From positions 15,450 through 79,449 of the forward strand of contig FLMG01001544.1 in NCBI GenBank assembly GCA_900088475.1: 64,000 nt of DNA, read 5' to 3'. The notes under the pieces are model-generated. The model was not told the DNA's origin and did not search any database. It worked only from the letters and a program-made list of their open reading frames with translations. This DNA is from Hyphochytrium catenoides. Lineage: Eukaryota; Protista; Hyphochytriomycota. Position 1 is the stretch's first letter. The number at the start of each line of letters is the position of its first letter. Shown one piece after another: positions 28,079 to 31,439 of the stretch. The position numbers and the translations under genes are program-made.

Positions 28079-31000
28079 CTAAAAAATTCCAACGCACCAC
28101 CTCTGATACTTGTCATACCACCGAGTCCGCCAGTTGTCTAGTGACATGTCAATCAAGCTATGGACGTAATCCTCACTTTCCCTAGCGCTCAAATCCAGCC
28201 TGAACCGCTCTCTGACCTGTTGAATGGCCACCTGTGGGTTGGCACCAAAGCATGGGAGGTTTTCATTGCCATTCGCTACCATTTCCATCAACAGTAGGAA
28301 GCGATGCGCTGAGCGCCTTGCGACCAGGAACGATCGCACGCAGAGAGATCGAAACTTTCTAAAGCGGGATGATCGCGGTCCACCCATCAGTGCTACGGCT
28401 TCCGATGTCAGCTTGAATGGAGCTCTCTCAAACTCCACATTCCCCGGACTATTCAGCAACATAAATCCAAAATCGATATGAAAGATGTAACCTTCGGCGT
28501 GGAGGAGGATGTTTCCGTTATGCCGGTCTTTAATGTTGAGAATGTAGCATATAATGGCATAAGCAGCCATACTCTTGACGAAGTTGTCGACCGCAATCTT
28601 GAAGGAGGTAGAGTTTTTCGACCCGAAGTGTCGCAGATAGAAGTCTTTGAGCGTCGTATAGTTTGGATCATTCTTCTTCAGTGAATCGATGGACACCGAG
28701 TCCGGGACAGCCTCGACCAATCCACAGTCATAGCCCGTGGCTAGGACCTCATAGGGACGAACCCACACTGGCAAGTTTGCCTCAGCGAAAACATTGCAAA
28801 ACTGGCGGATCAGCTGGGACGAGAGACAGATTAACTCAGTGTGCAAAAAAGACATAAAAGTTATGAACAGTGTGACGAAGAGGAGATAGTGAGAAGCAGG
28901 AGGACAACAAGAAGGGAATTTGCCAACAAGGGAGAGCAACCACCGGAAACGGTGTTAGTGAGTACAAACGTCCAGGTAGAGAATGAGCACCAAGGAACGG
29001 AAGAGGCAACGAGGACAAGAAGGTAAATGGCAATACTTCTTTAGATAGGAAGTCACCTGCGAAGCGAACTGCTCTTGTCGCAAGTCGTCATTACTCTTTA
29101 CAATAACAGGTAATAGCCTCCAGCCAGGAAGGCTGCCAAAGGGAGAGAGTTTGCGGTACCGATCTTCCTTCTCTCTCCACCTCTCTTTGAAGGCCACTGT
29201 GGGTTTGAGGTTGTTATCATCTTCCTCTTCGTGATCGGGCGCGTCATCGTCTAGTTCGAAGCTCTCAGAGTGGGCTTTGCTACTGCAAGGAACAATTGAT
29301 ACACTCATTAGCATCGACTGAACCTGGGAGTTGCGACTTCCTTCATGCCAAAGCTAACAAACCCCTTTAATGTCAATTGTAGAAATGAACGGCGAGACTG
29401 AGGAGTATAAGAGAGCTATGAGAAGAGCCATGAAGAGTTAGGAAAAGATATTGGCATGGACAGAAGCAAGATAAGCCATAGGGATGTATGGAGGAAGCAG
29501 CCTACCTGAGGTAGGCCTCGACACTATCGACACGGTGAGGGACTCTGCCGTGGCGCTCGAAGGTGGCCGAGATTGCTTTCTTCGTCAGAGGACTGTTGAT
29601 GTTATTCCCACCATTGGAACTGTTTTCCACAGGATGGTTATGGGGAAGAAGCCCCTTCTCATTGATGAAGGAGGCGGACTCCCCCTCATCCACTGGGATA
29701 AGGGTCACATCGGGGATGTCGTCCATAGCTTCTGTCTTGTCACTCTCTGTTGGCGACGTGGTACTCCAGAAGCCGAGGACAGGATTACTGGCCCTCCTAT
29801 TCATCGTTGAAGTCTGACCCATCTCCTCATCCCCATCATCTGGTCCAAATCGCAGCTGAATCTCGTGACCCCCAACATTGAAGGTGATGCCACTTCTCTT
29901 CTGCACGGGGCTCTTGACCGAAAGAACGTCATCCTCGTCCTTGGCATAGTCGACAACCTCCAAGCAAGCAAGGAAAGGGACTCTCTCTTTGCTATTGAAG
30001 CAAAAGCTCTCCTCACAAAGAACGCTTCGCACCCGATGATAAACGTTTCCTACCGGGATATACAACCCTTCTGAAGGTAGAAATCTCTTTCCTGTCCTTC
30101 CCAAATAATATCTTAGCTTCTCATTGCGGTTCTCAACTGCTATAGGCTTCAGGATGTATGATATTTTGGTCAACTCTCTTATAAAGTTGAGGTTGAGAGT
30201 GAAAGGTGTGGCTTTGCCGTCAAGATACTGCGGGCCTAGCGGGTTGAGTGCATGAAAGGGATTTGCTTTTCTCTCCTCCTTACTGTCCATTCCTCCGGGT
30301 ACTTCCTTGTAGAGAGAGATGGCCCCATAGTGTGTAGCACTGCTGCTCTTTGGCTCCGGCACAACCTCCCCAGGCCCTACGCCGTCAAGAAACCTTTGTG
30401 CACATAGTTCTCCTGCGGCTGAAACTTCCTCCATCAGCATGTTTAGCTTTTGTGCCTGGGCCGGGTTCCGGTACGCCTCTGAATCTATGCAGAACGACTG
30501 CAAAAACCACCACATGCGATGAGCGAAAACATGGGAGGATCGTGCCTGCTCTAGCAGAAGGTCCTTGACTCGCGAATTGTCGGCCGATCCTCCTAGGAGC
30601 ACGTAGCTGCAGAGTTGCGGTAAATAGAAGATTACGTCCGAAGGCTTTCTTTCCGCAGCCTGGAGAAGGTTGTCTACCGCCTCCTCTTGGTGGCAGTAGA
30701 GCTGCAGTAGAGATGTCAAAACACCAGGCTTTTTGTCTGTTAGCCTGTCGGGTAGTATGGCGCGAGCCACCTCCTGCCACTTCTTCTTCCATTTGGCTGC
30801 GTAGTTGTTCTCGTGTGGCAATTTCAAAAGCTGCTCCTTTGCCTCAGTGTCATCCTCTGTAGTGTCTAGCCACTCCAATCGATTCATCATCAGCACGAAG
30901 CCAGTCTGCAACAAACAGGAGATGACAGAGCCAACCAGGATCGTCATAAAGGTTGCTTCACCAAAGTCGACTGCTTTCCAGCGGTTGTACGAAGAGGGCG

Positions 31001-31439
31001 AAGAGTACCACACCCATAGCTTGCCTAATGAAGGTCCGCAGGGTCATCAAGGTGCAACATTTGCATAGAAAGGTTGGATAGTGTACTAGAATACCTGTTG
31101 CTATCCCTAAGTTTGCCATCTGCCAGACTATCATCAGCGTTACACGCCAACGAGTGTTTTGTCGGCTCCTGGACTTGAAGCGCACCACAAGAGCTGCAGC
31201 ATGAGAAAGCCATTCGTTAGGTCAACACGACGATGGGATAATCGAAGATGACCCAACTTACCCATCAGGACGAGTCTCAAGCTTGCGAGAACCACTAAGT
31301 CAAAGAGAGAACCATGGACGGAGTAGTTTTGGATGTCCTCTCTCAGCACGAGGAAGCTCCTGTTGACCAATGGTTGAATCACGTACACCAGGAAAATAGT
31401 GCAGTCCAAAAGCGTAGCAATGGTCAGAGTTAGCTGCAT
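28079..31439 (-). CDS. Phosphatidylinositol 4-kinase type III beta (Pik1-like) with four N-terminal predicted TM helices
   Basis: Helical domain [11 protein letters not shown]...[13 protein letters not shown]; NSKERVPFL; [45 protein letters not shown]; [34 protein letters not shown]. Confidence 0.93.

Follow-up and report, generated by a model that had tools for sequence, protein, structure and literature searches.

Can a type III PI 4-kinase be an integral-membrane protein? Type III PI 4-kinases are textbook peripheral enzymes, for which the place and time of recruitment set where PI4P is made, and this recruitment step is regulated by cells and hijacked by viruses. The conventional members PI4KB and Pik1 are soluble and are recruited via their N-terminal region by Arf1, ACBD3, Rab11 or Frq1. 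The window analyzed here, a stretch of 64,000 nucleotides from the protist Hyphochytrium catenoides, raises the question because a first-pass annotation reported that one of its genes encodes a PI4KIII-beta preceded by four hydrophobic helices. It is therefore necessary to establish that the helices and the kinase belong to one protein, and to consider what the helices are.

Gene model and kinase identity

The predicted coding sequence runs on the minus strand from 31439 to 28079. It consists of five exons bounded by GT..AG (2757 nt), which form one reading frame of 918 residues whose only stop is the terminal one. Exon 1 (31262..31439) contains the start ATG (31439-31437), the first transmembrane helix, TM1 (~31374-31433), the TM1-TM2 loop and most of TM2. 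It is separated by intron 1 (31194..31261; 68 nt, GTAAGT..CTGCAG) from exon 2 (31095..31193), which encodes the end of TM2, a basic and presumably cytosolic loop with an invariant T-R, and most of TM3. Retention of intron 2 (31025..31094; 70 nt, GTATTC..CATTAG) would shift the frame and lead to a stop at 30958. The membrane part of exon 3 (29506..31024) comprises the end of TM3, an S-Y-x-R-W-K loop, TM4 (30885-30956) and a linker. In its kinase part, a variable region separates the PIK accessory region (~30462-30647) from the first conserved segment of the kinase domain (~29844-30194). After intron 3 (29283..29505; 223 nt, GTAGGC..TTGCAG), exon 4 (29057..29282) encodes a segment of the kinase N-lobe that includes the ATP-binding lysine motif. 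Intron 4 (28814..29056; 243 nt, GTGACT..TCCCAG) is followed by exon 5 (28079..28813), with the catalytic core (DRHNGN, HIDFG), the C-terminal tail and the stop (28079-28081). The three 5' exons of the first-pass annotation (31439-31262, 31193-31095 and 31024 onward) are the same as ours in their coordinates; their splice sites are canonical and their phases join the kinase ORF.

The start ATG at 31439 corresponds to residue 1 of the homologues in the alignment and has an in-frame TGA 12 nt upstream. By codon usage, the proposed frame of exon 1 scores best of the six frames. All family, database and fold searches were run exon by exon, and use of the joined model was confined to translation, a hydropathy plot and a local alignment. 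Two methionines, M138 and M139, lie directly after TM4, and a downstream start there could also yield a soluble isoform.

The catalytic domain is a Pfam PI3_PI4_kinase domain (PF00454; E 2.9e-37, exon 5), and its motifs VIVKS, DRHNGN and HIDFG are intact at residues 658, 770 and 786. The best PDB matches are PI4KB (184 bits), PI4KA (151) and VPS34 (120), and the database relatives of the kinase are all of the PI4KB type. On the strength of the Pfam match and the margin of PI4KB over PI4KA, we retain the assignment as a PI4KIII-beta-type kinase. The PIK region was matched by PF00613 (PI3Ka/PIK) at ORF residues 123-184 with E 1.2e-5 and 25.2 bits, below the cut-off of 31, and by PF21245 at E 0.051; it aligns with the equivalent region of the relatives. 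In tblastn comparisons with two anchored oomycete proteins, exon 4 was 54-74% identical to residues 675-750 of P0001 and 660-713 of P0002, and exon 5 was 63% identical to both.

A four-helix membrane domain on the kinase

In a hydropathy plot of the 918-residue model, residues 1-26, 40-67 and 113-140 were strongly hydrophobic and residues 77-99 less so, with no comparable segment downstream of residue 140. The four hydrophobic helices thus span residues ~3-139 and are followed by the PIK accessory region and the kinase domain.

The same layout is found in oomycetes. The top database matches, full-length proteins from oomycetes, have four hydrophobic helices at their N-terminus, followed by a PIK region and a kinase. 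They align from ORF residues 2-10, and their offset of ~97 residues equals the length of the upstream exons. Homologous four-helix domains occur in the PI4KIII-betas of Phytophthora megakarya (OWZ14343.1) and Achlya hypogyna (OQR99035.1, 'PIK-J') and in proteins of Aphanomyces astaci (RHZ29744.1) and Pythium insidiosum (KAJ0409889.1). These closest relatives are genome-predicted models and not cDNAs. In databases, the oomycete records are named simply as PI kinases. A word-index protein search with the 503-residue ORF of exon 3 returned no match, probably because the full-length relatives are too long for its length window. The same kind of search with the domain alignment found only fragments of this family, and neither a stand-alone four-helix family nor a MENTAL protein.

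We built an anchor profile from seven oomycete N-termini only. It matched exon 1 with 27.6 bits (profile positions 1-59), the start of exon 3 with 24.9 bits (positions 96-141) and, weakly, exon 2 with 4.4 bits (positions 63-90), the last in collinear position. In a six-frame scan of 30700-33000, exons 1-3 were the top three of 78 fragments and were in the correct order. Residues D/E12, Y19, P23, D35, S44, R55, T73-R74, Q132 and N140, which are invariant in the family, are all present in the window's protein. Three of the invariant residues lie inside helices, namely the acidic residue in TM1, the arginine in TM2 and the glutamine in TM4. The family also shares a loop motif, S-F-x-R-Y-R, which is predicted to be luminal, and the basic TM2-TM3 loop is common to the window's protein and the oomycete family. 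An AF2 model of the N-terminal domain of the oomycete protein P0001 has four long helices (pLDDT 90.5, pTM 0.80).

It might be suspected that the gene model is an artefact, in that the transmembrane exons are not transcribed or make up another, small gene, and that the kinase starts downstream and is soluble. The methionines just past TM4 would suit such a start, and exon 2 is weak by itself. However, TM4 and the PIK region share one uninterrupted exon, and the three exons are collinear with a single homologous domain, without any loss of residues where they meet. Moreover, the full-length relatives have the same layout and offset, and PI4KBs from the transcriptomes of diatoms and foraminifers carry N-terminal transmembrane segments and a kinase on the same ORF. 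We consider an artefact very improbable. The first-pass proposal that a four-helix membrane domain and a kinase are encoded as one protein therefore stands, given the four segments in the hydropathy plot and the conservation of the architecture in relatives. Judged from sequence, the fusion is real: a lipid kinase of a type described as soluble in textbooks carries a four-helix membrane anchor, and sequence comparison shows this anchor to be homologous to the N-terminal domain of PIK-J-type PI4KBs from oomycetes.

Comparison with MENTAL and TMD0 domains

The first-pass annotation had gone further and likened the helices to the MENTAL domain of STARD3 and to the TMD0 of TAPL (ABCB9). If the anchor were a true homologue of animal MENTAL (or of TAPL TMD0), the kinase would be expected to reside on late endosomes, lysosomes or the vacuole, and might bind or sense sterols. 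The MENTAL domain has four helices with a VAP-binding FFAT motif at its end, serves as an anchor on late endosomes, forms homo- and hetero-oligomers and contacts cholesterol (PMC5430228).

Several observations are in keeping with such homology. Exon 1 alone scored 24.5 bits on Pfam MENTAL (PF10457; E 2.7e-5), above the gathering score of 22; the match covers the end of TM1, the loop and TM2, and it falls on the part of the profile that is equivalent in topology. The helix number and likely topology are the same. Four helices with both ends cytosolic are indicated by hydropathy, by the basic TM2-TM3 loop and by the AF2 model of the homologue; this arrangement is, however, generic to many families. 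In STARD3 and STARD3NL, as in the window's protein, the four helices are N-terminal to a cytosolic lipid-handling domain, although the attached domain is START there and a kinase here. Finally, the family invariants (the TM1 acidic residue, the loop acidic residue, and S and R in TM2) are those that the first-pass annotation had matched to STARD3.

However, the match extends over only 48 of the 176 profile positions (16-63), and exons 2 and 3, scanned exon by exon, did not match Pfam MENTAL. Neither did any of 34 related N-termini (9 of the oomycete type and 25 from other transmembrane PI4KBs), even at a relaxed threshold, so that the window's protein alone scores at TM1-TM2 and the anchored oomycete proteins do not. 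It is also important to consider that this case was picked for its resemblance to MENTAL, which inflates a single borderline score. In addition, Phytophthora and Pythium retain the domain despite being sterol auxotrophs.

Searches at the level of folds and distant profiles did not alter this picture. Atlas and PDB-wide fold searches returned generic helical bundles, with a best Z of 11.2 where the bar for helical bundles is ~13, and no MENTAL cluster came up in the Atlas. Atlas feature searches with residues 1-150 of the family member P0018 and with exon 1 gave no informative match. The anchor family profile, run against all PDB chain sequences, found only GPR12 (E 0.57), and a sequence search of the PDB gave no match. 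The sole TAP row of the PDB fold search aligns chain residues 306-474, which are not TMD0; for these results, the PDB copy used may lack a chain with the TMD0 sequence.

Two further candidates were discarded. A second MENTAL-like match in the genome (G000:C1310, 17.3 bits) was taken as chance because it lies in a hydrophobic, AT-rich ORF that lacks any gene context. An FFAT-like string, E-W-L-D-T-T-E-D-D, lies right after TM4; the key aromatic position is occupied by W, and no acidic tract precedes the string. It is absent from the oomycete relatives, and we dropped it as evidence for MENTAL because it is not conserved.

Of the likeness to MENTAL, then, the score of exon 1 stands, while the rest of the domain and the relatives do not bear it out; the likeness to TAPL TMD0 found no link in profile or fold searches, and the fold comparison with MENTAL yielded only generic four-helix bundles. 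We regard homology to either domain as doubtful, and the MENTAL/TMD0 reading of the anchor is not established from its sequence. Targeting to endolysosomes or the vacuole and sterol responsiveness were proposed from this analogy alone. The anchor is best treated as a family of its own, with any relation to MENTAL set apart.

Relatives and a second paralogue

In a phylogenetic tree, the window's kinase is sister to the clade of anchored oomycete proteins (P0001, P0002 and P0003; support 99/96), and a separate clade contains oomycete PI4KIII-betas without transmembrane segments. The window's genome likewise has a second PI4KIII-beta gene, on contig G000:C2755. The anchor profile had no match upstream of that kinase, where only ~2 kb remain before the contig end. 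Oomycetes as a group also have a second PI4KIII-beta in which no such anchor was found.

N-terminal transmembrane segments are present in about a third of the full-length relatives that we found. Among these are diatom and foraminifer sequences from transcriptomes, for example the PI4KIII-betas of Stauroneis, Pseudo-nitzschia, Thalassionema and Bolivina. They have three to four N-terminal hydrophobic helices, of which TM1 carries an acidic residue and TM2 an arginine as in the window's protein, but their kinases fall in a clade other than that of the window's protein and the anchored oomycete proteins. An iterative search joined the oomycete and diatom anchors, whereas a profile-profile comparison gave only 15% probability, and a common ancestry of the oomycete and diatom/foraminifer anchors is unproven by sequence. 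A bolder idea is that integral-membrane type III PI 4-kinases, in oomycetes, the window's protist, diatoms and foraminifers, are an old class widespread in stramenopiles and rhizarians, and that their anchor shares ancestry with MENTAL, a domain treated as an animal invention. We think this quite improbable; if it were true, MENTAL-like bundles would represent an ancient module that tethers lipid-handling enzymes to a particular organelle.

Possible function

Our favored explanation, which we consider probable, is that the 918-residue product of the gene is an integral-membrane paralogue of PI4KIII-beta, whose four transmembrane helices keep the PIK region and kinase permanently at the cytosolic side of a membrane. 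The four-helix bundle (residues ~3-139) would take the place of the disordered, adaptor-binding N-terminus of conventional PI4KB and Pik1. With respect to its topology, localisation and division of labor, we infer the following. Both ends are predicted to be cytosolic, because the TM2-TM3 loop alone is basic and acid-free in every member and the number of helices is even. The most likely location would be the Golgi/TGN or a post-Golgi compartment, since the family works there elsewhere. The conventional paralogue would retain regulated recruitment of the Arf/Rab type, and the anchored one would supply a fixed PI4P pool on one endomembrane.

The buried D/E12 in TM1, R55 in TM2 and Q132 in TM4 would form an intramembrane polar network, which could serve the packing of the bundle, oligomerisation or contact with a partner or lipid. 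These residues also invite the idea that the domain acts chiefly as a sensor or regulator, with kinase activity gated by the binding of a lipid, an ion or a partner membrane protein to the conserved buried charges. A pure anchor needs neither invariant acidic, arginine and glutamine residues within its helices nor the conserved luminal S-F-x-R-Y-R motif, and oomycetes and ciliates already fuse receptor-like membrane domains to PIP kinases (PMC3823935). However, we recognized no ligand-binding family or fold, and buried polar residues could merely pack a small bundle or drive oligomerisation. A primarily sensory or regulatory role appears unlikely to us, and we prefer a membrane anchor that fixes the kinase in place.

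A PI4KIII-beta paralogue built into the bilayer beside a conventional copy would be a natural experiment in fixing a dedicated PI4P pool. Among the oomycetes are major pathogens of crops and fish, and a leading fungicide used against them targets a PI4P-dependent oxysterol-binding protein; a lineage-specific membrane domain on an enzyme that makes PI4P is therefore worth knowing. The architecture is present in public protein records and has gone unremarked. We found no publication on a transmembrane type III PI 4-kinase, including in oomycetes and stramenopiles, although the oomycete genes may be among those described in Meijer and Govers 2006 (MPMI), and none on fusions of MENTAL to a 4-kinase, on PIK-J or on a membrane domain of oomycete PI4KBs.

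Comparison with known systems

The closest counterparts are the anchored oomycete PI4KIII-betas, which have the same architecture (956-993 residues versus 918), a nearly identical C-terminal tail and a kinase exon that is ~63% identical, but only ~25-35% identity outside the kinase core. Conventional PI4KIII-beta/Pik1 enzymes, such as human PI4KB and yeast Pik1, share the PIK region and the catalytic domain with its lysine, DRHNGN and DFG-type motifs, but have an N-terminal recruitment region where the window's protein has four membrane helices. The type IV transmembrane PIP kinases (GPCR-PIPKs of Phytophthora, RpkA of Dictyostelium and those of ciliates) set the precedent, within this broad protist group, for fusing a phosphoinositide kinase to an N-terminal multi-pass membrane domain (PMC3823935); they combine seven receptor-type helices with a PIPK domain, whereas the protein described here combines four helices with a type III PI 4-kinase.

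Gene structure and homology of the N-terminal anchor

The PI4KIII-beta gene lies on the minus strand, and in our model exon 1 begins with an ATG at 31439 and extends for 178 nt to a GTAAGT donor, exon 2 occupies 31193-31095 (99 nt), exon 3 runs stop-free from 31024 into the long ORF with the PIK region, and exons 4 and 5 (29282-29057 and 28813-28079) encode the rest of the kinase. Each of the four introns has GT..AG borders, and the joined coding sequence of 2757 nt is translated into 918 residues with a single terminal stop. An in-frame TGA is located 12 nt 5' of the ATG. In exon 1, the proposed frame has the best codon usage, on a par with the kinase exon; exon 2 has too few codons for a call. 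It may be that a downstream start gives a soluble isoform.

The decisive evidence is comparative. Searches were run on each exon separately, and the joined model was used only for translation, hydropathy and alignment-column bookkeeping. When the 503-residue exon 3 ORF was searched exhaustively with HMMER, the top relatives align from ORF residue 2-10 and have ~97 residues preceding the alignment, exactly what exons 1-2 and the opening codons of exon 3 together encode. These relatives are from Phytophthora megakarya (OWZ14343.1, 993 aa), Achlya hypogyna (OQR99035.1, "PIK-J", 956 aa), Aphanomyces astaci (RHZ29744.1), Pythium insidiosum and several unnamed assemblies. Every one opens with four hydrophobic helices, followed in the full-length proteins by the PIK and kinase domains. 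The A. astaci record, at 1867 aa, is about twice as long as its relatives, with the anchored PI4KB filling the first ~950 residues, and is probably a merged gene model.

We built an anchor profile from seven oomycete-type N-termini alone and ran it on each exon peptide of the window. Exon 1 matches profile positions 1-59 (27.6 bits), exon 2 positions 63-90 (4.4 bits) and the start of exon 3 positions 96-141 (24.9 bits), with neither surplus nor missing residues at the joins. When 2.3 kb was scanned in six frames with this profile, the same exons were the top three among 78 fragments. Homology thus confirms both the splicing and the choice of start codon. The first-pass annotation's claim of three 5' exons splicing in phase into the kinase ORF is thus borne out by the open frame and the collinear matches. 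Its four hydrophobic helices are likewise upheld by the four-helix homologues and by hydropathy, in which three strong segments and one weaker one fall within residues 1-140 and none is seen past residue 140.

The family-invariant polar residues are all retained in the window protein, namely D/E12, Y19, P23, D35, S44, R55, T73-R74, the S-F/Y-x-R-aromatic-R/K loop motif, Q132 and N140. The anchor domain of P0001, a member of the oomycete anchored clade, was modelled by AlphaFold with the family alignment; the model is confident (pLDDT 90.5, pTM 0.80) and shows four long helices, with two short ones in the loops.

Two features were observed near the 5' end of the gene. Copies of a 21-nt direct repeat (31413-31433 and 31493-31513, 90% identity, 80 nt apart) may reflect a small duplication or chance; one encodes residues 3-9 (LTLTIAT), and the other lies 5' of the ATG in a different frame. 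Farther upstream, a minus-strand ORF at 32952-33449 starts ..PNASFMRQLQEYE.. and continues into a Pro/Ala/Lys-rich tail. We take it to resemble the end of a dual-specificity phosphatase domain; if so, the intergenic stretch 5' of the kinase gene would be limited to ~1.5 kb.

Kinase identity and paralogues

The last exon matches Pfam PI3_PI4_kinase (E 2.9e-37), and its nearest solved structures are PI4KB (184 bits), PI4KA (151) and VPS34 (120). The VIVKS, DRHNGN and HIDFG motifs are intact, and Pfam picks up the PIK accessory region weakly, under its cut-off. By maximum likelihood on the kinase domain, the window protein branches as sister to the anchored clade of oomycetes (support 99/96), a position that suggests a stramenopile close to the oomycetes but not one of them. 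A separate oomycete clade, with Aphanomyces euteiches, Globisporangium ultimum, Peronosclerospora and Lagenidium, has no transmembrane segments.

The same genome contains a second PI4KIII-beta gene, on contig C2755 at about 2037-5770 (+), spanning loci L004 and L011, whose top PDB match is PI4KB (246 bits). Its nearest gathered relatives belong to the clade without transmembrane segments, and no anchor-profile match was found within the 2 kb before its PIK region, where the contig ends. Since both this genome and the oomycetes have a conventional and an anchored paralogue, the duplication appears, from these sequences, to be older than the divergence between this protist and the oomycetes sampled.

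Anchors beyond oomycetes

The first-pass annotation had called for a survey of protist PI4KB N-termini. Among 71 relatives of at least 700 residues, about 25 carry between two and four hydrophobic segments at the N-terminus, including the diatoms Thalassionema, Stauroneis and Pseudo-nitzschia pungens (MMETSP transcriptomes) and the foraminifer Bolivina argentea. Because these relatives come from transcriptomes, the fusion of helices to kinase is seen in mRNA-derived sequence. These anchors may share an origin with the oomycete type: iterative searching links the two, but direct profile-profile comparison gives only 15% probability, albeit with a collinear alignment of TM2-TM4. The diatom/foraminifer-type kinases are placed in a different clade from the oomycete anchored kinases.

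The diatom-type anchor is a distinct flavour. Seven such proteins (P0049, P0055, P0077, P0085, P0093, P0094 and P0131) have a common N-terminal M-P/F-F-L-x-P-A and an acidic residue in TM1. Diatom-type anchors often have a long acidic or low-complexity insert ahead of TM2, and H-V-R-S-T-A-P where TM4 ends.

Proposed mechanism

The TM2-TM3 loop is basic and has no acidic residues in every family member. Given this loop and the even number of helices, the bundle is predicted to insert with both ends cytosolic. The anchor would then tether the PIK and kinase domains to the membrane surface, with no need for recruitment of the Arf1, ACBD3 or Frq1 type. Alongside its conventional paralogue, the anchored form probably provides PI4P as a fixed pool on a single compartment. 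The acidic, arginine and glutamine residues that are buried and invariant point to a polar core, which may serve in packing, oligomerisation or contact with a partner.

Comparison with known systems

Transmembrane PIP kinases are already known in these protists (PMC3823935); for a type III PI4K with transmembrane segments, our literature search turned up no paper.

The anchor had been likened to MENTAL and to the TMD0 of TAPL. The TMD0 likeness found no support: the family anchor profile matches no solved (PDB) chain, and fold searches returned other four-helix bundles only (synaptophysin, sarcospan, MS4A, TTYH, connexins and designed bundles), with Z up to 11.2, below the tool's own bar for helical bundles. 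For MENTAL, part of the claim stands. Exon 1 alone passes the Pfam cut-off (E 2.7e-5; 24.5 bits against 22), which explains the original impression, and the match spans profile positions 16-63 of 176, the topologically equivalent region from the end of TM1 to TM2 with the loop between them. It is an isolated match: exon 2 and exon 3, searched separately, give none, and neither do any of 9 oomycete-type or 25 other transmembrane PI4KB N-termini, even at a relaxed threshold. The profile and fold searches argue against MENTAL as well, and a single borderline score is inflated when the finding was picked for looking like MENTAL. True homology to MENTAL seems to us unlikely, though its probability is not negligible. 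The putative endolysosomal targeting and sterol sensing of the anchored kinase have no independent support. The sole other MENTAL-like candidate in the genome (contig C1310, 35063-35164 (-), locus L002; 17.3 bits, below cut-off) is probably a chance match, since the ORF is short, AT-rich and hydrophobic and lacks an obvious surrounding gene.

Directly after TM4, the window protein has an FFAT-like string of the VAP-binding type, EWLDTTEDD (30849-30875, minus strand), which is absent from the aligned oomycete relatives. The FFAT motif of STARD3 sits at the matching position (PMC5430228); the string in the window protein is atypical, with W at the aromatic position.
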